NCBI GenBank assembly: GCA_964035545.1
Contig: OZ037769.1
Coordinates: forward strand, 10,880,633 to 10,944,632
Reading direction: 5' to 3'
DNA from: Bugula neritina
Taxonomy: Eukaryota > Animalia > Bryozoa
DNA: 64,000 nt
Position 1 is the stretch's first letter; every line of letters starts with the position of its first letter. A program made the position numbers and the translations under genes. The notes beneath the pieces are model-generated. The model saw nothing but the letters and a program-made list of their open reading frames with translations, was not told the origin of the DNA and did not search any database. Of the stretch, positions 16,701 to 47,491 are shown in pieces.

Positions 16701-19700
16701 TATTACTATATCCATATGTATTACTGTATCCATATGTATTACTATACTCTATTACTATATCCATATATTGCTGTACTGTACACTGTATTACTCTATACTC
16801 TATATTCTATTACTGTACTATATTACTGTACTCCATTATTACAATAATATTTTACAGATGGAGTACCTGTTATACATTTCTATGGGCTTTGTGGCAAGCA
16901 CAATGCACTGGTGCTAGAACTACTTGGGCCAAGTTTAGAAGATTTATTTGAGATTTGTGACAGGAAGTTCAGTCTGAAGACGGTACTCATGGTGGCCGTA
17001 CAACTGGTAAGTGTATGAGCATATTTTCTTCTCACCGCCATCACGACACTACTATGGATATTTGATTATGGTTTCTCCCTCCTTTGTAGCTGGACAGAAT
17101 GGAGTACGTGCACTCTAAGAACCTCATATACAGAGATGTGAAGCCTGAGAACTTTCTGATTGGGCGCCAGTCTACGAGACGGAATCATAAAATACACATC
17201 ATAGACTTTGGACTGGCCAAGGAGTACGTCGACCCTGACACCAAGAAGCATATTCCATTCAAGGAGAACAAGAGTCTGACTGGAACAGCTCGTTACATGA
17301 GCATCGGCACTCACCTGGGCAGAGGTAGGCTCTCAACACCTGTGCTAGTTCATACAGCAACACCTGTGGTAGTTTATACAGCAACACCTGTGGTAGTTCA
17401 TACAGCAACACCTGTGGTAGTTTATACAGCAACACATGTAGTAGTTTATACAGCAACACCTGTGGTAGTTTATACAGCAATACCTGTGGTAGTTTATACA
17501 GCAACACCTGTGGTAGTTTATACAGCAACACCTGTGGTAGTTTATACAGCAACACATATGGTAGTTTATACAGCAATACATGTGGTAGTTTATACAGCAA
17601 CACCTGTGGTAGTTTATACAGCAACACCTGTGGTAGTTTATACAGCAACACCTGTGGTAGTTTATACAGCAACACCTGTGGTAGTTTATACAGCAACACC
17701 TGTGGTAGTTTATACAGCAACACCTGTGGTAGTTTATACAGCAACACCTGTGGTAGTTTATACAGCAACACCTGTGGTAGTTTATACAGCAACTCCTGTG
17801 GTAGTTTATACACCTGTAATAACTCTTTATAATATTATACTTTCTTGATGTCATTCTACTCTTCTATTTCCCTTTTCTGACATTGTGTAATGAGGGGTAG
17901 ATGGGCAAGTTTGGGCATGTTTAGTTTTAAGCATCACCATTAAGTATATAATTGCAATATACAGCATGTGTTACTGTTCACTTACCTGATGGGCTAGTCA
18001 GCTACAGTGTCACAGCATGAGGTCTCAGCATAGTGCACCACCAGGTTCAAACCCCTTAGAGCTCCAGGTCATTGCTTACCTCACTAGATTCTAAGTCTAT
18101 TTATAGACTCTATTTCTTTTCACCAAGTGGCTGTTGAATGCTGGGGTTGGGGTTAATGGAGATTGAAAAGTCTTGAAATTAATTAGAAGATTATAGCTGG
18201 AGGCATGGATTATACAAGATGATGTGCAGTTAGAATTCTCCTTGACATTTGTAATTAGACTACGCTAGTGACTGTACGAAAAACAATGATAAGTTTCAGA
18301 ATATTGAGTGTCAAGTAGAGTTTACACTTCCTAACTACTAACTAGATTGTAAACTAGCGTGAATAGGCTACTTGTGGCCCCAGGATCTAATATGACAGGA
18401 GCAACGACTCCTAATCTTTGCCCTACCTTTGCAGGCTGCAATCATGTTTCTTTATTTCATTTGTAAAAAAACAGATTCAAATGGACAACAACTCATCAGA
18501 TGGAAGTGTTTTAGTAGAGACTAGTGAGCCAACAACTTTATATTTGAAAGCTTAAAGTTTGGCTGATTTAATATTGATTAATGGCAAGATAAAAATAGCC
18601 ACTCTGTTCATTTTCAAATTCAAGTAATGGATGTTTTAAATTATTTATTCTATGAAAGCAATACCTTGTATACATAGAAAGATTTTAATTTCTCTATTTT
18701 AAATATAACCCCGACTGCAGTCCTATCCTAAAGCTTGTGATACCAAATGGGTTCTCGACTAGTACTAGTTGTGTGCTGCAGTTCTTCCTGCATGTATGTA
18801 GATGGTGCAACTAATCTATATTATCAGCTAATGAAAATGTTTACAAATGAGATTGGTTACTGTGTGCTAAGTTACATTGACTGCAGTTTTACCTGCATAG
18901 TTTCAGTTTTACCTGCATAGTTTCAGTTTTCATCATGCTTGCGCAATAATTATTAATGTATAATGTTGAAAACGAGCTGTCCTAAATGTAAACATATAAA
19001 CTTTTCCTTCACAGTGCACGTGCACCAACACTTGCGTCACTATGGGGAGCAATATAGATATACAACTACTTCTAGACTGACATCAAACTGCATAAACAAT
19101 ATTTCTGAAATCCCTAAGTGTTGGTAAAAGAAGGGAATTTGTGTAGTTAATTATGCTAGTGTTTTTTGGTAGATTTCAAAATGAAGAATGCATACATTTT
19201 CTTATGCAGTTCTCATTTGAGGGGCAAATAACTTCTTGGAGTCAGTAAATTTATTGGTTGATTAGGTTAACTTATTTTTTATTTGCATTCTTACTATCAA
19301 TTGAAATAACTTTGTTAGTTGCAGTTAGTAATTCTTTCTAGTAGCAAACAAGTTATAGCCGAGAAATACAGTTCTCAACTGTTAGATTTTTCTTAAAATA
19401 CTATTTCCTATCTTTATTATAGAGTTTTGCTTGATGGTTTGTTTACATAATGTTTATAATATCAGTGCTTAATAATACTAATTGAATTTAATATGCTGTT
19501 TGATTCTGCCAGTATAATTATACGATAACTATAATTAATATTATCATTATAAACTAACTAATATAAATTAACTGTTGCTAGTAGTAAGGAGTGTTGTCAG
19601 ATTAATATTATATACGTGATTTATTGCTTCAAATTTAAGTTCCTAGTGGTGATAGAATAAGGGTGTGTTTGTACCATCATAATTTTTATTCAAAATGTTA

Positions 19701-32361: not shown

Positions 32362-35300
32362 ATGACTGAGTTAAATCATTCAGTTTATTCAATCTACAAA
32401 TGGCTATTGTCTAGACACATTAAAGTGCCTCTAGAATGGGTACAAGAGTGTGTTAGCTTTCTTGTTTCTGAGGTGAGCCACTTTGACTTTGACTTTGAGT
32501 TCGACATTCAATGATTCACTTTCAGACTGAAACTCATCATCATGAATCATGTCCATAGTTTGAGTTACAGTGTGCATGAACCACATTCACACTGTGGCTG
32601 ACACTTGTCTTTGAAATGAATTTGACAGTCACACATTCACTTTAACATTAAGTTTATTTATAAAAATTTTGCATTTAAATTTAATTTAGGATTTGATAAT
32701 TTTATTCTTAAAGTCGATATTCTATTTCTTACATTTACAGTCTCAATACAGTTTCAGTTTGAGTTGCTATCAGTATCATTATCAACTATAATTAGTAGAC
32801 TGATTTATTATTAGTCTTACATATTTATGAGTAGAAAGTTATTTTTGTTTTAATTTTGACTTAACTTTAAGTTTAAATTGCAATTGAGGCACATTAAATT
32901 TACTAAAGTTAATGCTCTGACTTATAAATTCAAATAGAGTAAGATTTAGATGAACAACTGAGTATGTTTGCTCTGAATCTGGGTGCAGATGAACTTAGTT
33001 TTTATAGTGTTCATTCTTATTCTAAGTATCTTTATCCACTAATAAATTGTTAGTAATTTACCTGTCTTCTTTTTAATTTTTATTATCTTTTTTCTTCATC
33101 TCTCTCGCTTCCTTCTATGTTTTCTAATGCTACTTGCAAGTATTCAAGTGCTGCTTGAATATACAGTCTTGTTTGACACTTGCTAGGGCATTTCTCAGGA
33201 GCTGATGTGTGACTCAGTGTATGAACAGTGGTTGGTCAGTGATGTGAAAACTTTACAAGAGGGTGTTATTAACTTCAACACAGACATGAAGGAACTGAAA
33301 AACGAAGTCTTTGCTCTTCAGGTTAGCTGGGATGTCTAAAATATAGTTTCCATTACTTCAGTCCAACAGCTTCTCTGCTGTTTAGGCTTTGAAGCAGTGA
33401 TACAGTCTAAACTCTAAACTAATATATTTATGTCTCTCAATCATTATGTGTTCTGCATTTTATTCACTCATATTTGTATTGACTTTCATTGTAGATGAAT
33501 TATGCAATAGATATTAGCAAATCCAGATTCAGTCAACTGAGAGCTCTGCTGGGGGTAAATGATGGTAACACAGATGTACAGGCATTTGAGGACCCTAATA
33601 CGAAAGTGAGGCATGGTTTTGCACATAATATAAATTAATGTTGTTACATTTTACATTTTATAAATAAGCTTTAAGTTTAATCAGCAATTATGTATGCTTA
33701 GACATTTGTTTAACTAATAGTATCTGTTCAGTTCATGTTTTGTAAAAAAATTTTGTTGTCGTAATTTTTGCTTTAGTTTGTTTAGTCTACGTTTTTTGTG
33801 TATCCACCATAAATATTGTAAAATTAAAGTTGTTATATTGCTCTGTGAGATTTGCTGTTAAAGCGCTCTGTGAGACTGATTGTGCTAATTTATAATCTAG
33901 TGGGAGCCAAAGCCCTCCAGATGCCTGCTGCTGGAGCTGACAGACGGAGTTCAACAGGTCAAGGGCATTGAAGTAGAGCCTCTCTGTGAGTTATCAACTG
34001 CGTTAGAGTGTGGGACAAAGGTAGGGGCATCTATAGTAAACACAGTAATAGTGGGAGCATCCTGACTCTGAGGCTAATCACTACATGGTTATCACTTTGA
34101 GCATTTATTCAGACTAAATTTTAATTAGTTATGAAATTTAGAAATATAAGTGTTTGTAAAAAAAATTTGCTAAAACAATATTCTTCTGAGCATTCACGCT
34201 AAACAATCAAAGCACCATCATCAAAGGTAAAATGTTTGGTAGTGGCTCGTTCACTTGTTTGGAATAACAGATCAGAAAAATGTTTCACTAATTTTTCTCT
34301 TTTTCAGATTTTTTTTGGCTAAGATTTTTTTGTTTAAACTCAGCTAGCAAGCTTCTCAAATTTAGAGAATACGTTGTAGAAATTATCTCTCTTGTGTAAT
34401 TAGGGTTTTACAGCATCACAACTTGCTTTTATTTATTATGTTTTATGTTAATCTTCCTAAACATCTCAAACAATAATTTCACACATACAACTGCTTCTTA
34501 TATTAATGCTTTATGTTTTTCTTATTTGACTGTTTGAGAAGTTATAAAATTCAGTTTTCTGGAGAAGAGACTTGCTGTTTTGATATCATATGCCATTTTG
34601 TAGTTAGGGTCTAAATATAGTGGTAAAAGTAAAGTTGGGTTTGCATGAATAGAAAGTGAAAAGGTAAATAAAAGGATGTTTCAGGTTCTATACACACTGC
34701 AGTGTCCAAATAAAAGTAACATAGTAAGCTATAGCCTTTGATCTTGTACTTTAGGTACTGATTAAGGGGCCTATAAAATGTGTCCGGGGTTGTTTGTTAT
34801 TGAGAAAGAACTGTATATCTATACTCGGAGGACATGTAGATGAGCTGGTTGAAAGATACAGCCAACCCTCTGTATTAAAGAGCCTGCTGTGAGTATATAG
34901 TCATGCTTTACTTGCATACTCTACCCTGTGGAGAGTTGAAACACTCAGTATTAGTGTGTTGTGCCGAACAGTTTGCAGTCACTAACGATACATACATTGA
35001 AGTCACTGCATGACTTTTATACACAAAAGGGGGCCACTGAAAACAGTTCTGCATTTATTGGCTTTGCAATCATCACTGTTGATTAAAAACATTTCAAATG
35101 GAGAAAAAATTGTTGGTCAGGGAGAGTTAGTCTTCAAGGTGCTGGATTGACTATCTAAGCTAATCAGCTGATATAACATCCATTAATAATGACTACTTCA
35201 ACAAGACACTAAAGCTGATTTCACAGCCATAGTTTTGAAGCATAAAAAGTAATATTTCCATGTTTTGAGAGTTTTCCAAATTAGTTGACGATTATTTGAT

Positions 35301-38300
35301 GCACCATTAGTAATGACTAACCACTCATTTTTCATTCTTGCTAATGCTATGTGTAAATACTATTTCACACCTTTTAGTGACAACGTTGCTGCTAATCAAC
35401 ACAGAGAGCTTTGCTCAAAATCCTTTCCTAATGCTGGAAAAATTAAAGGTAAGTATACTGTTCAGTAGCCAATGTATTTTACACTGTGCACATCTCTATG
35501 GTCGTAGAACTGTTTAGATGACATGCTACAGTTTACCAGGCATGACCATAAAGGCATTATTTTGTTCCATCCTGGTGAAGATTACAATATTTCAAGCTTT
35601 ACACTATCTGATCTTATTTGAATATTTCTCTTTCTCTCCTTTGGTAACTTGTTTTAGCCACATTTCTCACATCTTTATCCCCTTTTTCCACCGCAGGCTA
35701 CCAAACTCCTGGAGTTGTCCTTTCAACATTTATTTAAAATTGTAACATAGTATTACTTCTAATGTCATCTTTGTAACCAGGTTTTCACTGCTAGTACTAT
35801 ATTATATACAGTCTTAGTATACACTGTTGCAATGGGTCTGTCATACACTGTGTATTTGAGCAATTCAAACTGTGGAATACTAATAAACACACCTTTTTAA
35901 AACTACTATTACTTACAGTATGACTTATTTTATTTAAATTATCCCCATATAATGTGTCTGGAGTTCATTATTTCTAGTACACTACTCAGATACTCAGGTA
36001 GATAAGGTATCAACTATAACACAGTATAATGCACACATTTGACATTTATTTTTAAATTAGAACTTTGAATATAGTAAGTTTACAATTTATGATATAACTA
36101 AAGTTGTAGGGGGTTATAACCCCCTCAAGTTGGGATATTTATATGAAAACTATAACTGATATCATGTTGTCAATGTGAACCAGCATCAGCAGTAGCTCTT
36201 AGAAAAGTCAAATTTATGTCTTTAAATTCCATACATCTTTTAATTAATGGCAAAATTTTGTAGGTGCTAAAGCTGATATAAAACCCAAAAGCTTAACTGA
36301 CATTAAACAAGCACCTTCTCAAGCTGCTCGTAATCTAGACTGTGTGACTGCTGCTGTTAGACGCAATGCTAATGTGATGCCATCCAGCATGGCTATTGAG
36401 TGGGATGACGGGATGAGTGAAGATGAGTTTATAGCCGAGACAAAATTTGAGCCAAAAGTCAGTAGCCCAGTTACCAAGAGTAGGACTGGTCCTATCTCAG
36501 AGCTACCTGTAAATACGGCACCAGGCTACACTAAGCCGTCTCCAGCGCCTCCTACTTCAGTGGATGTCTTTCAGTCAGCTGAGGAAGTTAATTGGTCCGA
36601 TGATGATTTTGATAGTCATGAACAGAACAATGCAGGAAAGGGTAATGCCAATTCAATATCTTCACGTGCACCCAATCTGTCATTCTCTCAGACTGCAGGT
36701 AGAACCCCTATTGTAGCAGCCGTGGACATGCACCATGAGAACCAGTCTTTCACAGAGGAGGCCTTCGAGGATGCTTTTGATGACTCAGTGGACTGGTCAG
36801 ATAACATAGACTCCCCACAGCCTAGGAGTGTGTCACATGTACCAGAACCTAGGGGAGTGTCACACGTACCAGAACCTAGGGGTGTGTCACATGTACCAGA
36901 ACCTAGGGGTGTGTCACATGTACCAGAACCTAGGGGTGTGTCACACATACCAGAACCTAGGGGTGTGTCACACAAACCAGAACCTAGGGGTGTGTCACAC
37001 ATGTCGGAGCCAACTAAATTACAACCATCAGAGAAGAATATTCAAAAATGTGAAAGTAACACAAGTGTTATTGACTTGTTATCTTCTGATGACGAAGATT
37101 TCGGCATACCATCTGAGTCCCACAATGCCAGTGTAAAGACAGCATTCAGTGCTCTCACTAAATGCTCTGATAACTCTACGATGAATAAAGCAACAGCCAA
37201 TCACAGTCATACACCTACAAACAGAGGGTCAGCCAGGATGAGCGGAGACATCGCAGCAAGTGGAGATGTTGAAACAGCCAATAGAAGGGAGAATGTTGGA
37301 GCTACAGGCAAATGCTCAGACTTTCACGCACCTCATTTCCACTACCTCAGTCAACTTCCTTCACTGCTAGAGGTTTCCAAAAGAGTTATAGTCAAAGTAA
37401 GACTAGTAATTCATGAGGTTGTTAAATTGTAAATTGCCAACTTGTGACTGTTTTAGTTCATAGCTTACTAAAATATTTTACTTAAATACACTTATGCTAA
37501 GAGGGTTGAAGATCTTTGTTTTCTTCTATTTTATGTAGGCCCACATATCAACTGTCCTAGATAAGATAGGCACTAGCAAGGATAAAAGGGAATGGACTCT
37601 TAGTGTGAGAATCAACGATGGAACAGGCTACCTTGACTGTCAGTTATCTCACCATGTATGTTTGTTGAAATAATATACATTGTGTAATATACAAGACTAT
37701 TTACCATGATACCATATATGATATATGCTAAGTAGATATATAGCATTACTTATATTACAAACACATTTGCATTCTATATACTCACATAAATTAAAGTAAA
37801 TAAACTTGTTGAAATCAGGTCATACATAATTGTTATAACTCTTCAGGTTATGTTTAAAATGGGCTCTGTTTGGACAAAATAGTTTTCTTAAATTAAATTA
37901 AAATGTGATGTGTTAGATTAAACCCAGAGCACTATTCCTCACAGTAACTATGTAGAATCTGCTGTAGCTGTCAGAAGTGTAACCCACTGTGTGGGACTTG
38001 TACATCAAATTCTTTGTTGTAAATCCCCAACTGAAACTTTGCTAACTACTAAACCGATGTAATTGAAATGCCCATTGCTATATTTTTGAACTGTTATACT
38101 GAAGTCTAAACATTAAAACTTTAATTATATAAAAATAAATAAACTATATAAATTAAATAAAACCATAGCTTTAAAAAAGAAAAGTTATATTATAATTCTC
38201 ACATATGTTAACAGTGTTTTCTAACTCTGTTGACGTTTGATTAAAGATACTTGAGTCAGCCATTGGACCAGTGAGAGAAACTATAAAGAAAAGCAACTCC

Positions 38301-39234
38301 AACCTGACTCAAAGAAGGATTATTATACAGGTGGGCGTCACAATTTTGAAACTAGTATATCTTTAGAGAATGCACTGGTCACATACATAACAAGGAAATC
38401 AGTATATAAAACCAGTTGCTAATTGTGAATTAGTAAACATTCAGAGATAAAGGACCCAATGCACTGGGTAAAACATGAATTTTGCAGTTCCAAGTGACTC
38501 ATCGCAAGCAAATTTCTGTTGGATAATGCAGAGTTACATTTAAGCTTGATTTAAATTGTTTACTTAACTGGAATCAAATTAAGAATTCAGTCAATTCTGG
38601 GCAGAAATACAAGTGCACAAATACTGGCAATAGCAATGCGATAATTAAATGACATGTTGATCAGGCAAAAGGGACTGTAAATTTTGGTTCGTTTTTGCTT
38701 ATTGTGTTTCATCTCTGGAGCGTCATTGTAGTTTAAGGACAAAAATAGAATTGTTACAGGGGAGGACAATTGTTGTCATGTCAACTTAATTATATCTGTA
38801 CAATATCTTTACAACATAGTCGTATTACATTTATAATATTTCATAGTTTGTTATGTATAGATCATACACTGTAAAGATAGACTGTTATGTGTAGATCACT
38901 CACAGTAAAGATAGATTGTTGTGTATAGATCATACACAGTAAAGATAGATTGTTGTGTATAGATCATACACAGTAAAGATAGACTGTTGTGTATAGATCA
39001 TACGCTGTAAAGCATGTTGTCTTTCTCTCGCTTTGCTCAAAAACATAACATTAGTCATCTGAATACTCCATCTTTTATCTGCAGAAGATGAAGAACTTTG
39101 GTGACTATTTGTCGTCAGTGAATGGCTTCATGGAGCTAGACCTGTCAGCACCTGCTGTGCCTACTCTAACTAACATTAGACAGCCTACGTCTGCTGATAT
39201 TACTCTCTTCCGGCAATGTCTGGCTCAAAGGTAG
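32362..39234 (+). CDS. RMI1: RecQ-mediated genome instability protein 1 (10 coding exons)
   Basis: Exons 32362-32472 (WLLSRHIKVPLEWVQECV), 33187-33321 (VYEQWLVSD), 33495-33606 (IDISKSRFSQL), 33901-34020 (WEPKPSRCLLLELTDG), 34755-34888 (GCLLLRKNCISILGGHVDEL), 35378-35448, 36264-37396 (long linker, FHYLS), 37539-37655 (WTLSVRINDGTGYLD), 38247-38330, 39085-39234. Both N- and C-terminal OB-fold motifs are present. Confidence 0.92.
36821..37009 (+). repeat. Coding 27-bp tandem repeat (7 x PRGVSHVPE) in the RMI1 linker
   Basis: Unit CCTAGGGGTGTGTCACATGTACCAGAA, in frame within the long exon. Confidence 0.93.
38848..39012. repeat. 34-bp minisatellite (~4.7 copies)
   Basis: Unit TGTATAGATCATACACAGTAAAGATAGATTGTTG, ending about 70 nt before the last RMI1 acceptor. 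Confidence 0.9.
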
Positions 39235-40081
39235 CGGTTCTTTATGAACACGTGGAATGAACAAAGAATTGAAGTTACATTTTACTGTAAGATCGTCTGT
39301 TATTAGTACCAGGAATGAATGAAGTCACATTTCACTTCAAAACCTTGATGAGGCCAAAATCACAAATTCAAAATTATATTATTGCAATTCTATAAAACAA
39401 AAACACTCTGAAAACTAATGTGGTATATTAAACTGTTTCTATTGTATGTAGTACTTTTATTCAATCAAAGTTTAATTTATTTTTTGATACTGGTTTTTAT
39501 TTAATGCTGTTGGTAGACATTTATGTTACCTTTGTTTATTTCAATAAACAGTTTATTTGACTTCTCAACTATTTGTACCTTAGTGTTAAAATTAGGTATT
39601 TCGGACAAGTAAAATACACTGCAACAATATAGTGAAACTGCTGGTGCTAGTTCTCAATTGTTAGTTGCCTGTAGTTGTGTTGTTTTTCAAATCTAAATTT
39701 TATGTATCATTTATAAGCTGCAATCACAATGGATAATTCAGCTAAATGTCAACAAACTCTTAATGTCTAAATCAGACATGCTCTGCTAAATTAATTTGAT
39801 GCCCATGTATTTTTCAGGCCAGGAAGTGTTTCATATCTTAGCTCTACCAGAAATTAAGCTGATAATACCCTTTATTTTGCAATTTCCAAGTATTACTCCA
39901 TTATTATAATGTTACAAAACAGAAAAAAGTTAAATGTTTATTATTTTCAAAAAGTGTCATTGTGTGAACAAGATTAATCATTGCTCAATCTTGATCTGTG
40001 TCCAGTGACCTATGGAGTTTGGTGAGAACTGGAACGGTGAGATATAGAGGGAAAACTGTAGGTGTATTTATACTCTAATAT

Positions 40082-40548
40082 TGTTGTAGTTTTATGCTAA
40101 CAACTACTATGTGTGAGTATGAGAAGCTAAAACATAACTCTTTGTATTTATCCAGGAGAGAGGACTGCGAGTGTTCCGAGAATGATAATATACATTTACA
40201 CACTTGGCATTTGAGAAAAGATATTAGATAAAACAGTAGTGCAACATCAGAACCATACATGAGTAGTAATACTAGCTAAATGTCACTGAGTGCATGTATT
40301 GTCCTGCTTATATAGGGGAGCTTAATCTTGATTGGCTCCACGAGTTCCGGTCTCCCTGCGGATGGCTATCTGCAGCCAAGTAGAGTGTGCAGAATCCCAA
40401 GGGTGCCGCCATGAGACATGCATGTGAGTGTTGCAGTTAAAAATAGAGATGCGTGGCCAATGTGCTTGCAGCACAGTTAGTTGAGTAGACTATGGTCCAT
40501 ATTGCGACCAAGGGAGGGGGTAGCATGATGTATGCCACGGCCATCGCA
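40082..40548 (-). mobile_element. Probable solo LTR
   Basis: GC-richer non-coding island. Minus strand runs TG...CCAATC...TATATAAG...ACTACAACA. ATAT at 40078-40081 and 40549-40552 is a possible 4-bp TSD. An alternative outer boundary is at 40727. Confidence 0.5.
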
Positions 40549-41386
40549 ATATGAAACTTACAAGCTTGAAACCATGAAACGCAGTAAGAGCAAATAATTG
40601 TGCCCCATTGGGCCAAGCAGCACTATCGATAGTTTACATTAAACTTGCTGACCATTCGAATTCATCTCATTTCCTGAAGCTGTACCAGTGTTAAGGAAAG
40701 TAGTGCAGTGGAACACTCAACTCTACATTTTCAGTATGTTGCTTTATGTGAAAAGTGTCTATGTCTCCAGTTTATGCTGTAATTTGGTTGTGATTGGTTG
40801 AAAATGTTGACCCACTCAAGCAAAAGTGCGTTAGTTTCAGTGCATGACAATTCGATGTGCCACTCAATGGGACCACTTCTTTTGCACTCATTTTTATAAT
40901 AGGGAACTCAATAGGGAAATGTGATAGACATTTTTTAGTACTATAACCACAGTTTCACTTATAGATTCAGTTATAAATGTTATTTAAAGTCTTGGGAACT
41001 ATTTGTAAAAACTCTAAAATATAAGTGAACAGTTTATTGTGGTTGGATTTTACTTGGAGAGAAGTAAGATGTACTTATGGCAGGTTAAATTATTCTGTTA
41101 CACAAATGTGAAACTGTTATATCTGCAGATACAAACTATTTCAAATTAATAAAGTGGGAGTCATATGGACTGCCTCGAACTTAGACAGAATTTCAGCATA
41201 TTAGGGTTATTTTAACAAGGTGTTATAGATTGAAGATAAAAATAGAAAACTTTGAAGTATATTATAAATGAATTAATAGACGTATAAGAAACAGTAACTA
41301 AAATTAGATGTATGAGATAACATATTTAGCGAGTATAATACAAGTCAAAAACATTACTACATAATATTATTCTATGGTATAAGTTC

Positions 41387-42517
41387 TCATATTAATGGTG
41401 TGCAGATCAGTTCACAGGCTGTTCTGCAGTTCGCGCCACCTGGAGGGCTGCCAGTGATGGTTCCATACGAGATTGGCTCGTCAGGGTTAGCCTGTCTCTT
41501 CTATAGAAAAATAATAGTAGCTAGTACACTTTACATACACGTCTGAGTTAAATAGGATATATGTAAGAAACGGGTCCAACTGTAAATGCACTGTGAAACC
41601 AGCCATATGCATTGCAATGCTGTAACATGTAAATATTAGATTAGAAAATAAAGCATAGTTTTGGCTACAACATTGCAGTACTACCATAAATATAGTACTG
41701 CAGACATGTGCGAATACAGATGGTGACATCGTAGTTGGAACTGGGGAACTGCAAAAACAGTATAATTTATGCTGTGATAGCAAAAGCAGTTTGGTCAGAG
41801 GTAGGTGCAGTAATGGAGAAATTAAGAAAAGCCTGTGTTCTGGATTAAAAATGTAGCATAAGAAGTTATGTTCTCGCGAGAATTTCAACCTATGCCGCAA
41901 ACCAAAATTTAATAATGAAATTAAAGAACTTAAGCTATCTCAATTTTTCTACTACTGTATCTAATAAGTGTTTAGTCAACAGTATAAAGCAGAAATCTGG
42001 AGAGATTAATTTATGTTTATTTAGTCATATATTTTTCTCAATTAGTTTAAGGTCCAGCATTAAGACTTATATATAGGGGAGCAGCCGTGGTCTAAGGGTT
42101 AAAACGTTTGCTATGTGAACGCGAAGTCATGGGTTCGAACCCCGACAAAGGCCATTGGTGATGTTAGAAAGAGCATCAAGTCATAATTGCTACTGTGCCT
42201 CATCTAAACAAGTCCTTATCCCGTTCCAACTAAAACTCTTTATATCAGGGCTTTCTCACAGGAATAGCGACTATAAACTTGCGAGATTAAGACTTATATA
42301 ACCACAGTGAGTTTTGCATAGTAGCACGTACGTGAATAGAGTGAGCAGTTGGCCTAGCCTCTACCAGATTTATGGCTATCATGTTGCTCTGCCACAACCA
42401 GATGTTAAACCCTGTCTGTAGAAGAAGCAGAACTACCACAACTACCAGCAAAACATCTTTCACTCGCTGACATCTTCCATGTGGTGAGCCCTTCTTTTCA
42501 ATCTCTGTGAACTCCAT
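41387..42517 (-). CDS. Small two-exon putative secreted/type II peptide precursor (99 aa), family not recognised
   Basis: Exon 1, 42517-42332: agcATGg context, MEFTEIEKKGSPHGRCQRVKDVLLVVVVVLLLLQTGFNIWLWQSNMIAINLVEARPTAHSIH, donor GTACGT. Exon 2, 41500-41387: acceptor TTTTTCTATAG, KRQANPDEPISYGTITGSPPGGANCRTACELICTPLI-stop. Phase-0 junction. Both exons are GC-richer islands. Minus-strand AATAAA at 41033-41038. Confidence 0.65.
41803..41962. mobile_element. ~160-bp MITE, copy 2
   Basis: Colinear homologue of 16104-16264, located in the intron of the small peptide gene. Confidence 0.8.
42074..42285 (+). mobile_element. tRNA-derived SINE, copy 3
   Basis: GGGGAGCAGCCGTGGTCTAAGGG head and GGTTCGAACCC B box. 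15-bp TSD ATTAAGACTTATATA at 42059-42073 and 42286-42300. Confidence 0.92.
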
Positions 42518-44858
42518 GCTGTACCATTCGGAATAAATTACACTCACTTTTATAATTATATTTTTTAAAACTGGAAAATGTGCCCAGGTTATAAAAACAA
42601 TAATTAAAATAAATTGTTATCTTATAAAATATTATATTAGCTTTGTTTTTATTTGGTAAATGGTTTTGGTATGTAAAATAAGCAAACCAAATGAATTTAT
42701 AAATGTTATAAAGTTTGCATCTTGAATAATAATTTATACAAAGTGGTACAGCGTTCTTGAATACCAGCAGTAAGATATATTGGAAATATCAATCATCTAC
42801 AGAAAACTCACAATAAATGCTATATTTATGTATTATAAGCACTAAATTACATCATTGTGTTATTTATAGATTGTGAAGTCTGAAAATCCCAAACTTAAAT
42901 ACAGAAACTAGTTTATAAGAGATATGCTATAAGCACATAAAAGTGTTGAAAAACAATATAAATGTAGTATTGCTAAAAAAAGAGAACTGACCTTTCAACT
43001 GTCGTATCTGCTTATATTTATAGCAAAATCCAACAGTCAACTAAAATAACTTTATATTTATGACTGAGTTGAAAGAGTTTTTATGCTTGACTGTCTCGCT
43101 TGCTACCAGAAACTGAAATGGCCTGTGCTACTTGCATACAAGAGCTAATTCATCACATCCAGGCCAAATTAGAAATCAGCATTAGCTGGGCTGCTAAAAT
43201 CATCAAAACAACAGCATATATCCCTGTGACAGCTTTCATCACTGGCAACCCATTGCATCATAATATTGAATCTGCTATGCAATTTCTGCTCTTACAATTA
43301 TGATTCATAAAGTATATTATGTAATAATATTTTATTATAGTGCAATGCATTATACAGTCTGCTCATTCAAGTGCACTAAAAGAACATATTATTAATTTTG
43401 GTACACTGATGTACCCCCATATTAAGGAAATGCATATATGTGCTACTGAAGTGCTTAGTCAGAGTGAAAATATTTCACAAAAAATCATAAATCTAAACAG
43501 AAACACAACTGTGAAATTCTTTTTCTGTAATCTACATCAAATGCTATTAGCCAAATTTAGTAAATATAGAATATTTATTTTCTACCAGACTTGCACTAAA
43601 TTTATATTATATAATTATATTACATATGAAAAAGTGATTAGACATCTGATTACAGAGAAACCCCCTTACAAGTGCACTATGCACCAAGATATTTTTTATT
43701 TTCCTCACACATACAGAATTATAAGTAATATTATGCAAAATTTGTGCAACAAAAGTGATTGCAAATTTATTGAGCAATACAAAGCAGTTATTAAGTAATA
43801 TCATGTATGTATACTAAATTCACAAGATTGACTGCTTTACACTAAAATATTGTACTTGGTAGAATGTGATAAAAATTTAAATGTTGAAAGGGCATATGCA
43901 GACATTATATATTCAAATAACAACTCGTATATAGAACTTTCGTCAAAAACATTATTACTTCATACAGTTGTTCATATATTTGCATCATTTCATCATATTA
44001 TGCTGAAATCATTTAAGTATGGCAGAAGTTGTCTTCTTTTGTTAGTACTTTTTACAACTAGTGTTTTAAAACTGAAAGCAAGTAAATTGAGATTTGGTAT
44101 AAAAGTATCATATAAAATGTCATATAACTAAACATGCTGTGTTGAGGTATCTGGAGCGTACGTTGCTAAGCAACACAATAATTTAATGAATGGTTGTTAC
44201 AAAACTAACTAAATAACAGCTTTAGAAAATTTTAAAAAGTTCTCATCTAGAGATGATCTGTCATAAAGTTCATAAATAAGTAATTATTGTTTTCTAATGT
44301 TAGGCTGCATGAAGATGGTCAATGTGAAGATTACAATAGACTAAGTGAATCTAGTATAGTAGGGGTAAGAGGGGGGGATAATTACCTAACAGGTTAGATT
44401 ACTTGCACATAATATGCTTCTTAGTCTACCCGTAGAATATTTTGGTAACTTTTGTCAATTTTCATGATATTAACATAAATCTATTACAGTATGATATAAT
44501 TTATTTATATAGAATATTATTGATTGCATTAGTTCATGAAAGTTACACTTTGACATCACAATTGAGTAACACAAATAACATAATAATATTGATAGTTTGG
44601 CAATGAAACTAAAATAGAGTTCAAGTAGCGGAATAAATAGGTAAGACAGAAAATAAGCAAAACAGGCCACAATGATAACTTCAACAGAGTTTCACTGAAC
44701 TAGAGTAGAGAATTTGATTACTTCAACTCAAGATTGTATCTTCACATTAGTATTTAGTTACAGGAGCCATGAGTTCAATATATCCTCATATCTACATGAG
44801 AGTAGCTATGAAATTGCACTTAGCAGAAGTGAATACAAGAAGTATGTCCATATGGTGG

Positions 44859-47491
44859 TTAGTCATCCAACTCCTCGTACTTGGCCAGTCTCCTTCGCAG
44901 GGTCTTCATCTGGTCATTCTTCTTTTGCAGCATTTGTTTCAAGTTCTTAAATGGAGTTGTCTGACTCACCTGAAAGTAGCAACAAAGATAATACAGAGCT
45001 AATCAGACTCCAACCCACCACCAGATCTCAACCCACCACCAGACCTCAACCTACCACCAGATATCAACCTATCACCAGATCTTAACCTAGCACCAGACCT
45101 TAACCTAGCACCAGACCTCAACCCACCACCAGACCTCAACCTACCACCAGATATCAACCTACCACCAGATATCAACCTACCACCAGATATCAACCTATCA
45201 CCAGACCTCAACCTACCACCAGACCTCAACCTACCACCAGATCTTAACCTACCACCAGATTTCAACTGATTGGTGGTGATTTAGATACAAAATTATGAGT
45301 TTGTGACTAACAAACTAAAATAAATATTATTTAATAAATTACAAAGAATCTGTGCGACATTAATTTCATTTACCATGTCTAACAATACTACTCTAATGTG
45401 ACATAACTGTTAGTCCAGCTGATAGCACAGCTTTTCTATGAGTTTATCATATGGCATACTAAGTATATGTAGTATACTAAGTATATGTAGTATATTAAGT
45501 ATATATGGTATACTGAGTATATGTTGTATACTGAGTATGTATAGTATAATGAGTATATATAGTATACTAAGTATACGTAGTAGTATACTGAGTAGTATAC
45601 TATGAAGTGGGTAAAGTATACTAAGTGCACTGTGAAAATACACAAAACACTTGCACCTTCTTTCACTTCTAAAATAATGATTAAAACAGTTTTTAACACT
45701 TTAATTAGAGCATTGTCACTGTTCAAAGTTTTATTGTTACTAGTTGTACCTAACACCTACCTTCTTCTCTAGCTCCTTCTCGGCCATGTCTAACATTTCC
45801 TGAACTTTGAGCAGTTCGTGTTTTGTCTCCACCATATTAGACTCCATCTTATCAGCCTTGGCATTAGCCTGCTGCACATCCCCTTCCATGGTAGAGCGCA
45901 AGCTTCTCAACTAAGGTCAAGGAAATAGCAATGGGAATACGTGAGCAACTCACACACAAAGGAGGTAGGAAAAGTAGGCTGCTGTGAAAACTTGCATCTT
46001 ATAACTAAGAAAATAATATCTTACTAGTAGAAAATAAAAAACAACTACTTCTATCAGCATATGTGGTAAACAATTAGACATATCAAATTATATTTTGTAT
46101 TACACAGATAGTTGGAACAAAAGAAAATCTATAGCTGCACTATAGTTAATTTAATATAAAAACTTATTTTCACTCAAAAAATGCAGTTTGTCAACTAATG
46201 ACCTAAAGATGAGTAACCATATTTGCTGAAAAATTGCATAAGAGGAGACAACTAAGTAAACTCAAAATGATAGTCATAGAAAATTTCTGAACTGAAGATA
46301 ATTCTTTTCTCGAACTGGCAGGACTTGGACTAAAATCAATTCATGGTAAAATAAAGACTCACCAACTTCTCATAGAATAATCTAGAAGCTCACCTGTTGT
46401 TCCAGTTCCTGGACCTCAGCAGGGTCATAACCTTTCTTTTTATTCATGGCAGCTTTCAATGCTTCTTCTTTGCTCCTCAACTGATTTGAAAGAGCTGACT
46501 TTTCTTCAGATACTCCAAGAGCTTGTTTTTCCACATTTCCAAGTCTAAAATAATGCAGAAACGTTAAAAATACAATTAATTTGACTATTTAAAAATATTT
46601 GCAAACAAGACTAGGTATGTTTAAAAATGTAAATACAAAATTTATTTTTGGCAATTTAGAAGACTAGGTGTGCTAAAAACCCTTTTTTGTCAGTGGTGTT
46701 TAAACTTTCATGAGACCAGAAAATAGCATGGCAGTCAGAAATAGCCACTCCATCACTATGTTAGCACTCATAAACTCACTAATAAAGTTACTGTTTGAAG
46801 TTGGTAGGGTGATGCAGTGCAAACACTGAAAGGCACAATAATATTATGAAGGTTAAACTTTAACCATGGTGTAACCTTAAGAAAAAGCTTTTACATTTAC
46901 CATTTACTTGTGCATTTAAATATGAGCACATGTATTGCATGTATAACAATCATCTAAGCAATACAGTTTGTCAACTTAATACCTTGATCGCAGCATTTCA
47001 TTTTCCTGTTCCAATTCTTGAATTTTCATAGATAACAATGCAGTTGTTCCACTTTCATTGAGTGGCTCTAATTTAGAAGAGGCTAATGCAGACAAATCTG
47101 TATCACGAGAAGTGCCCATAAATTCAGCTTCTTCAAAGTCTTTAATCTTCTCGAGCAGTTCGCGGTTTTCTAATTCTGAAATGTCAGCTTGTAACTTTAG
47201 GTGCCACTTTTCAGCTTGTTGAAAGAGTTGACGCAACAGAAGAACGTTTGTATGAGACGTATTAAGTAACTCTTCATCTACTTCACCACGTACTACTGCC
47301 AACAAGCCATCTAACATTTCAGTAACTTCATCCACAGTGTATGTGTCTTCAAACAGCCGACTTGACTTTAGATCTTCAAAACAAGCATCAACACATCTGA
47401 GCCTTTGACTCCTCTGGTATCTAGCAAAGCGCATATAATTTATCACAGTGGCTTGATGGTGGTCATTAAGACCTAAAGATCCAGTAGCCAT
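44859..47491 (-). CDS. LZTFL1: Leucine zipper transcription factor-like 1 (BBS17), 4 coding exons
   Basis: Exons 47491-46983 (LGLNDHHQATVINYMRFAR, EDTYTVDEV, NVLLLRQLFQQAEKWHLKLQADISELENRELL), 46544-46394, 45910-45761 (MAEKELEKK), 44969-44859 (QTTPFKNLKQMLQKKNDQMKTLRRRLAKYE). Confidence 0.96.
45004..45266. repeat. 18-bp minisatellite (~14 copies)
   Basis: Unit CCAGA(C/T)CTCAACCTACCA, ending about 35 nt from the last LZTFL1 acceptor. Confidence 0.92.
45455..45625. repeat. Degenerate ATACT(A/G)AGTATATGTAGT minisatellite
   Basis: ~18-bp AT-rich units in LZTFL1 intron 3. Confidence 0.8.

Follow-up and report, generated by a model that had tools for sequence, protein, structure and literature searches.

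A spliced gene of Bugula neritina encoding a predicted membrane-anchored precursor of a three-cysteine peptide

BRI2/ITM2B proteins are type II membrane proteins from which a furin-like convertase releases a C-terminal peptide. In the precursors of conotoxins, defensins and neuropeptides, a conserved N-terminal targeting or pro region and a dibasic site precede a mature part that is hypervariable around a fixed Cys framework. Bryozoans are among the animal phyla least studied at the molecular level, and our literature searches turned up no family of secreted or tethered peptides specific to them. Bugula neritina, a bryozoan, is a fouling invader and the source of the bryostatins. Here we describe a two-exon gene on the minus strand of a 64,000-nt stretch of the B. 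neritina genome (NCBI GenBank assembly GCA_964035545.1, contig OZ037769.1, positions 10,880,633 to 10,944,632 of the forward strand; hereafter the window), which encodes a protein of 99 amino acids. It is a genuine protein-coding gene of this animal, real, spliced and expressed, and sequence comparison places it as an orphan in a small family apparently limited to Bugula. This gives a concrete, expressed orphan family with a testable model, namely an anchor, a dibasic cut and a three-Cys helical "zipper".

The likeness of this gene to BRI2/ITM2B is one of mechanism only: the predicted product would share a single-pass anchor oriented N-in, a C-terminus in the lumen and a short peptide freed at a basic site. 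However, it has no sequence similarity to those proteins and about one third of their size, and because it carries neither a BRICHOS domain (the Pfam search was blank) nor an R-x-x-R site, it is not a member of the ITM2 family. With the conotoxin, defensin and neuropeptide prepropeptides it shares the general layout given above, but it differs from them in having no convincing cleavable signal peptide, an odd number of Cys residues, the i/i+4/i+8 spacing of a helix and no homology.

The initial annotation, made from the sequence alone, had presented the gene as hidden, but the same 99-residue model is already in GenBank (KAF6023463.1, UniProt A0A7J7JBZ4, hypothetical protein EB796_018219 of B. 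neritina). That entry has the same two exons, length and synteny, with LZTFL1 upstream and RMI1 downstream, and 89 of its 99 residues (90%) are identical to ours; it differs at ten residues, including A54D, and its intron lacks both a short interspersed element (SINE) and a 73-nt piece described below. The copy on the second haplotype, KAF6022918.1 (EB796_018774), is annotated only as a 71-residue read-through of exon 1. Both proteins lie on contigs of GCA_010799875.2 with this LZTFL1/RMI1 arrangement and belong to the one 90% cluster that a search with exon 1 returned, and neither record, nor the literature searched, offers a functional description. The gene model is thus public, but the family has not been described, nor have its features. 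In the following, three lineages are compared, namely W (the window), A (VXIV02002709.1, identical to the JGI contig L008) and B (VXIV02002788.1), the last two being contigs of GCA_010799875.2, which was built from two Virginia colonies and shows high heterozygosity (PMC7576161). The name B. neritina covers a complex of cryptic species (PMC11480708).

Structure, transcription and coding capacity

The coding part of exon 1 (42332..42517, minus strand, as for all parts of the gene) has 62 codons, with the ATG at 42517 and the last codon abutting a GTACGT donor. It encodes a charged N-tail (residues 1-21), a hydrophobic segment and a linker ending in AHSIH. A phase-0 intron of 831 nt (41501..42331) follows, which is of the GT-AG type and reads GTACGT...TTTTTCTATAG, and the coding part of exon 2 (41387..41500), 37 codons and a TGA, starts right after TTTTTCTATAG. 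Exon 2 opens with a Lys-Arg dibasic site as its first two codons (41495..41500) and continues with a Pro/Gly-rich stretch and a Cys tail. Translation across both exons (62 + 37 codons) yields the 99 residues that the initial annotation had proposed, with all the features that it listed. Residues 22-42 (42392..42454) form a predicted transmembrane signal anchor carrying the family motif Q-T-G-F-N-I-W-L-W, and the tail holds the family signature N-C-x3-C-x3-C (41402..41431), which has G-G-x ahead of it and is probably helical.

Transcription was followed in three RNA-type runs, X1, X2 and X3, available as unstranded assembled contigs from a sibling B. neritina lineage that is 92-95% identical to the window. 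The proposed joint of 41500 to 42332 (CT..AC on the plus strand, GT..AG on the minus strand) is present in these contigs, with a depth of 210 in X1 and 43 in X2. In X3, a 410-letter contig covers 42332-42510, breaking off precisely at 42332 and continuing at 41399-41327, with 31 letters beyond. A 597-letter contig (depth 519 in X1 and 96 in X2) extends from 42333 to 42935, with 30 further letters unplaced, indicating a leader of at least 420 nt, and at the other end of the gene X1 and X2 depth is present in the bin 41291-41487 and zero below 41290. The neighbouring gene LZTFL1 is expressed and properly spliced in the same data (joint 45910 to 46394; a three-exon contig; depth 16 in X2 and 68-109 in the X1 contigs). 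As LZTFL1 is spliced properly and its introns are nearly depthless, the libraries behave as RNA. Depth is also near nil at 43261-44442, between the two genes, indicating that our gene is a separate transcript. Its contigs (210-519 in X1) exceed those of LZTFL1 in depth, contig depth being a rough guide only.

An unspliced form is present as well, represented by a contig that runs from exon 2 into the intron (41471-41724; depth 476 in X1 and 85 in X2). A further apparent "joint" in RNA-type contigs, from 41724 to 41798, matches a 73-nt intron stretch (41726-41798) that BLAST finds missing from lineage A (L008, L009), which indicates that these contigs carry the unspliced intron of the sibling lineage. 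Within the intron, an 80-codon open reading frame (ORF) starting at 41729 was considered and rejected, being only 41 codons long in the sibling lineage.

The leader of exon 1 (42518..42965) is AT-rich, with 24% GC and six upstream ATGs. The 3' untranslated region (3'UTR; 41296..41386, ~90 nt, 23% GC) showed no canonical AATAAA on inspection of the sequence. A candidate TATA element, TATAAATATAAG (43012..43022), read from the sequence rather than from mapped 5' ends, precedes the furthest transcribed sequence by ~30-50 nt; lineage A retains it, and B does so in part.

The composition of the transcript changes exactly at the ORF borders, GC content being 24% in the leader, 45% in the coding part of exon 1, 53% in that of exon 2 and 23% in the 3'UTR. 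In shuffles that preserved the raised GC of the exons, both were open across the joint in only 0.35% of cases per frame (P ~0.0035), and the remaining frames meet a stop 4 and 31 codons past the joint. The ATG, donor, acceptor and open frame are all kept in A and B, with donor and acceptor identical, while the intron measures 831 nt in W, 547 nt in A and 627 nt in B. All three lineages share the main ATG and its CAGCATGG context unchanged, whereas the upstream ATGs are not conserved (six in W, three in A, five in B).

Indels among the three lineages likewise preserve the frame. Exon 1 is 95-97% identical to A and B with no indels, and W and A differ by 13 substitutions (10 non-synonymous and 3 synonymous) with no indels over 300 nt; exon 2 of A is open for 37 codons. 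In B, exon 2 has 18-19 substitutions and 3-4 indels, every one a multiple of 3, and a moved stop that leaves 34 codons, but it retains KRQANP, G-G-x-N and all three Cys. The frame has therefore been maintained through 13-28 substitutions and 3-4 in-frame indels. Of 177 non-coding indels nearby, in a 16-kb alignment, 24% are multiples of 3, which gives P 0.013 for three of three and P 0.003 for four of four. The KR site and the C-x3-C-x3-C framework, both pointed out by the initial annotation, are kept in W, A and B and have counterparts in the three paralogues described below.

The rate of protein change was compared with that of LZTFL1. By the Nei-Gojobori method, dN/dS is 1.01 for W-A and 0.60 for both pairs with B, so that no purifying selection is visible from substitutions alone, whereas LZTFL1, which is very strongly constrained and served as the neutral benchmark, has a dN/dS of 0.01-0.04 (dS 0.14 for W-A, 0.15 for W-B and 0.05 for A-B). 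These values suggest that the protein sequence is weakly constrained, although frame, motifs and Cys residues are kept. The change is concentrated in the tail, exon 2 having a dN of 0.167-0.184 in the pairs with B against 0.028-0.050 for exon 1, which makes the tail ~4-6 times faster.

Several of these observations weigh against a functional, spliced precursor gene. Besides the high dN/dS and its contrast with LZTFL1, these are the distance of the RNA source lineage from the window, the origin of X1 and X2 from one sample (X3 alone coming from another study), and the mere 30 letters on the shorter side of the joint-bearing contig. Moreover, the unspliced form equals or exceeds the spliced one at the acceptor (476 versus 210 in X1) and would encode a 76-residue product without the Cys tail, and the leader is ~450 nt long with 3-6 upstream ATGs. 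A transcribed non-coding or defunct locus, that is, a long non-coding RNA (lncRNA) with a facultative intron whose frame of 99 codons is kept merely by the closeness of the lineages, would account for the W-A dN/dS of about 1, for synonymous and non-synonymous sites being slowed equally relative to the intron, and for the high intron retention and long leader rich in upstream ATGs. We nevertheless consider it highly improbable. The GC steps fall exactly at the ORF borders, the frame is open over a joint that was observed independently, only in-frame indels occur, and the context of the main ATG is invariant while upstream ATGs come and go. The strongest point against it is that three paralogues at ~30% identity share the ORF architecture, the motifs and the intron phase. 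An lncRNA has no conserved frame and no coding composition; here the frame, the GC steps and the paralogous ORFs are all kept.

A small family within Bugula

A search of the genome with the exon-2 peptide gave one weak match on contig 9 (E 0.36), in which 10 of 18 residues were identical, including N-C-R-T-x-C-x-x-I-C. About 0.7 kb upstream of this first contig-9 tail, on the same strand, lies an exon encoding a basic N-tail and a hydrophobic segment that ends in F-I-L-W-L-W; it has a GTGAGT donor right after VEERR and matches exon 1 in BLASTP with an E of 2e-5. A profile search of the genome (E 0.019 before inclusion) added two further complete genes on contig 9, and a repeat search with the enlarged profiles found nothing further. 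On this sequence evidence, the family is small and has four complete members, of which our gene is one. Whereas our gene stands alone on contig 5 (10.92 Mb, minus strand; 62 + 37 codons, KR at the joint), the other three cluster on contig 9, at C9:351480-352423 (plus strand; 57 + 37 codons, RR at the joint), C9:345500-346886 (plus strand; 98 + 39 codons, KKR) and C9:338056-339186 (minus strand; 98 + 28 codons, KKR). In each of the three contig-9 loci, the exon-1-like and exon-2-like pieces are 0.66-0.98 kb apart on the same strand.

All four genes have two exons, a phase-0 intron between the anchor/linker and the tail, a GT donor and an AG acceptor, and a K/R-R site at most 3 residues from the exon joint. 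They also share the transmembrane motif Q(S/T)xF..W(L/M)W and the tail G-x2-N-C-x3-C-x3-C. Otherwise little is fixed: G, N and the three Cys are the sole invariant columns in the alignment of six tails, and the start Met and the Q of the hydrophobic segment are the sole ones in that of exon 1. The contig-9 paralogues are ~20-35% identical to our gene, with linkers of 15 to ~50 residues and tails of 23-37 residues. One of their tails ends in Gly, a possible amidation signal, another has two extra Cys, and their introns hold (TA)n microsatellites.

Two further observations concern loci related to these genes. The contig-9 gene at 339 kb has a copy in the sibling lineage (Logan contig L025, ~1150-1180) whose exon 1 is interrupted by a TAG eight codons ahead of the donor. 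The exon-2 peptide of this copy is intact with hardly any change, KKR being replaced by MKR. On contig 5, two exon-1-like loci stand in tandem (4638901-4639092 and 4642856-4643041); both encode the N-tail and anchor seen in the family, with a Cys in the linker, and both have GT donors. No exon with N-C-x3-C-x3-C turned up over several kb around them, and their tail may be a different one.

Outside Bugula, the databases searched held no relative. The window exons were searched separately, and the whole-protein searches used KAF6023463.1. Pfam searches with both exons and the GenBank protein gave only a sub-threshold DUF2570 (E 0.2). The ESM Atlas gave no match by features and, by structure, only generic long-helix look-alikes (TM <0.55; model pLDDT 0.47). 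With phmmer, the GenBank protein found only its own cluster and one hydrophobic-segment match among 1.84 billion representatives, and an exon-1 profile run against 5.8 billion proteins found only genomic read-through ORFs derived from Bugula (JGI, Logan). Scanning the JGI metagenome contigs for exon 1 gave 600 pattern matches, none of which was confirmed. The motifs of the gene are likewise absent from the main text of a neuropeptide prediction for B. neritina (PMC4990251), so that Pfam, the ESM Atlas, phmmer and that main text relate it to no described peptide family. The lineage-specific character that the initial annotation had suspected is supported, "Bugula-restricted" meaning not found elsewhere in collections that hold few other bryozoan sequences.

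Predicted topology, processing and release

The best 19-residue stretch of the hydrophobic segment has a Kyte-Doolittle value of 2.44, with a net charge of +3 on its N-flank and 0 on its C-flank. Each of eight exon-1 sequences contains one such 19-mer (2.07-2.55), preceded by an N-tail of 17-34 residues whose last 15 carry +2 to +5 net, and followed by a C-flank of 0 to -2. Under the positive-inside rule, a positive N-flank gives an N-in, C-out anchor. Since the flank charges follow this rule, hydropathy and charge heuristics point to an N-in, C-out signal anchor.

The initial annotation had read the N-terminus as a classical cleavable signal peptide with a signal-peptidase site at VEA-RP. Such a peptide has a short n-region, a core of 7-15 residues and small residues at -3 and -1, and signal peptidase cleaves some 3-7 residues past the core. 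The VEA-RP site was rejected because it lies 21 residues beyond the core and because its -1 residue, Ala54, is Asp in A and B. Moreover, a basic N-tail of 21 residues followed by a conserved hydrophobic segment of 19-21 residues is indicative of a type II signal anchor, which fits the sequence better than a cleavable signal peptide does.

The best explanation overall, to which we give a somewhat better than even chance, is a membrane-anchored precursor from which a convertase releases a 35-residue peptide that forms inter-chain disulfides. Residues 22-42 would serve as the type II signal anchor, leaving the 21-residue basic N-tail in the cytosol and bringing the 57-residue C-terminal part into the lumen of the endoplasmic reticulum. 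There, an enzyme of the prohormone-convertase type (PC1/3- or PC2-type) would cut after Lys-Arg and free the peptide. The genome has at least 7 loci with convertase P-domains. The three Cys, at i, i+4 and i+8, would share one face of a short helix, and their odd number on one helical face suggests inter-chain disulfides, most plausibly giving a covalent dimer. AlphaFold2 places a helix exactly on Cys25-Cys33 of the tail, with low confidence (pLDDT 60). As the released part evolves fast and diverges strongly between haplotypes, an extracellular role in recognition, defence or signalling would suit it better than one in housekeeping. On the opposing side, the furin consensus R-x-x-R is absent at all four basic sites, whose P4 residues are Ile, Glu, Val and Ala. 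The predicted two-copy complex of the exon-2 peptide scored 0.03, which is evidence neither way.

Off-consensus basic sites would be expected if the product were an unprocessed small type II membrane protein in which the basic residues merely accompany the exon joint and the Cys tail works while still attached, perhaps joining adjacent chains by disulfides at the cell surface or in an organelle. The argument from hydropathy and flank charges applies to such a protein equally, the longer paralogues have other K/R-rich stretches, and conservation peaks in the transmembrane motif, suggesting a function inside the membrane. Even so, a K/R-R pair lies at most 3 residues from the joint in four of four genes, in surroundings that otherwise cannot be aligned, and the sibling 339-kb copy keeps its exon-2 peptide while exon 1 has a stop, which is hard to square with a function that depends on the whole tethered chain. 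We therefore regard a permanently tethered product as distinctly unlikely.

The alternative favoured by the initial annotation, a classical secreted prepropeptide with a cleavable signal peptide, a cut at KR and a pyroglutamate, in the manner of neuropeptide, toxin or antimicrobial precursors, agrees with the Gln that follows KR in W, A and B, with a conserved N-terminal part ahead of a hypervariable tail on a Cys framework, which is the usual pattern of toxin and antimicrobial peptide (AMP) precursors, and with the presence of convertase genes in the genome. At the sequence level, a candidate basic processing site does flank the predicted mature peptide in every member (KR here; RR, KKR and KKR in the paralogues). 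In addition, the hydrophobic segment consists of a 12-residue V/L core followed by Q-T-G (around T35/G36), which could permit a cut just past the core. Yet the Gln is replaced by G, A or S in the paralogues, N-regions of 17-34 residues occur in every family member (21 here), and the Q, F and W.W conserved over ~21 residues would be unusual for a disposable signal peptide. Together with the failure of VEA-RP as a cleavage site and the lack of a match to any known peptide family, the main text of PMC4990251 included, this leaves a classical prepropeptide unlikely, and the anchored precursor with a released peptide remains our preferred reading.

Haplotype divergence and genomic surroundings

The gene lies in a block where the two haplotypes A and B are unusually far apart. 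In the flanks on the LZTFL1 side (48000-44501) and the RMI1 side (39500-38001), A-B divergence is 1.4-4.9%, whereas over the gene (43000-41000) it is 10.6-11.8% in three of four 500-nt windows; the fourth, 42500-42001, is mostly coding exon 1 and diverges by 3.7%. Private branches in the flanks are 0.052 and 0.119 for W, 0.013-0.014 for A and 0.015-0.016 for B, and over the gene (43000-41295) they are 0.044, 0.035 and 0.066, respectively. The A and B branches are thus 2.5-4.5 times longer at the gene than in the flanks, the W branch is not lengthened, and across the gene A and B are as far from each other as either is from W. A Fisher test of the 39.5-44.5 kb block against both flanks, with the poorly aligned 40001-40500 left out, gave P 6e-24. 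Between A and B, exon 2 has a dN of 0.167, three times the neighbouring synonymous divergence of 0.051, and exon 1 a dN of 0.028.

Balancing selection on old allele classes, introgression and lineage-specific acceleration are possible sources of this pattern, as judged from three sequences. A more specific proposal is that long-term balancing or diversifying selection maintains polymorphism in an extracellular recognition peptide encoded by the gene, because the haplotypes are 10-12% apart at the gene against 1-5% over LZTFL1 and RMI1 while the Cys framework and KR are kept. B. neritina is a colonial, sperm-casting and symbiont-bearing animal, and possible roles for such a peptide would be colony self/non-self recognition, sperm-egg recognition or control of symbionts. 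From the sequences in hand, we rate this proposal as improbable. The tail is the fastest-changing part of the gene, between cryptic species as well as between B. neritina haplotypes, and is thus a candidate marker in species or colony recognition or in defence, where it may also have a functional part.

The intron of W also holds the SINE mentioned above, a tRNA-derived element of 212 nt (42074..42285, plus strand) lying antisense to the gene and flanked by a 15-nt target duplication, TATATAAGTCTTAAT, at 42286-42300 and 42059-42073. It is not present at the orthologous intron site in three sibling-lineage sequences (L008, L009 and L010), suggesting that the insertion is recent and lineage-specific. 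Summed contig depth over the element is enormous in all four runs compared, which suggests a very high-copy family. ARAGORN and Rfam found no match in the window, the SINE included.

As the initial annotation had noticed, two housekeeping genes border the locus, which occupies a 5.6-kb spacer on contig 5. Upstream, on the same strand, lies the LZTFL1 orthologue (44880-47428, minus strand), with PF15294 exons at 46979-47428, 45758-45901 and 44880-44969. We considered whether the two exons might be a 3' extension of LZTFL1 and rejected this idea, given the near-nil RNA contig depth over 43261-44442; the exon-1 contig, moreover, ends near 42935-42965, downstream of the TATA-like element. On the other side, the RMI1 orthologue (33901-39230, plus strand) converges on the gene, with PF08585 N-domain exons at 33901-34023 and 34755-34862. 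A 362-codon ORF at 36344-37432 (plus strand) without a Pfam match is probably the large, poorly conserved middle exon of RMI1. Farther along the window, a 249-codon ORF (17099-17848, plus strand) is an exon of a kinase gene, its residues 1-68 matching the protein kinase domain PF00069 with an E of 2e-12.

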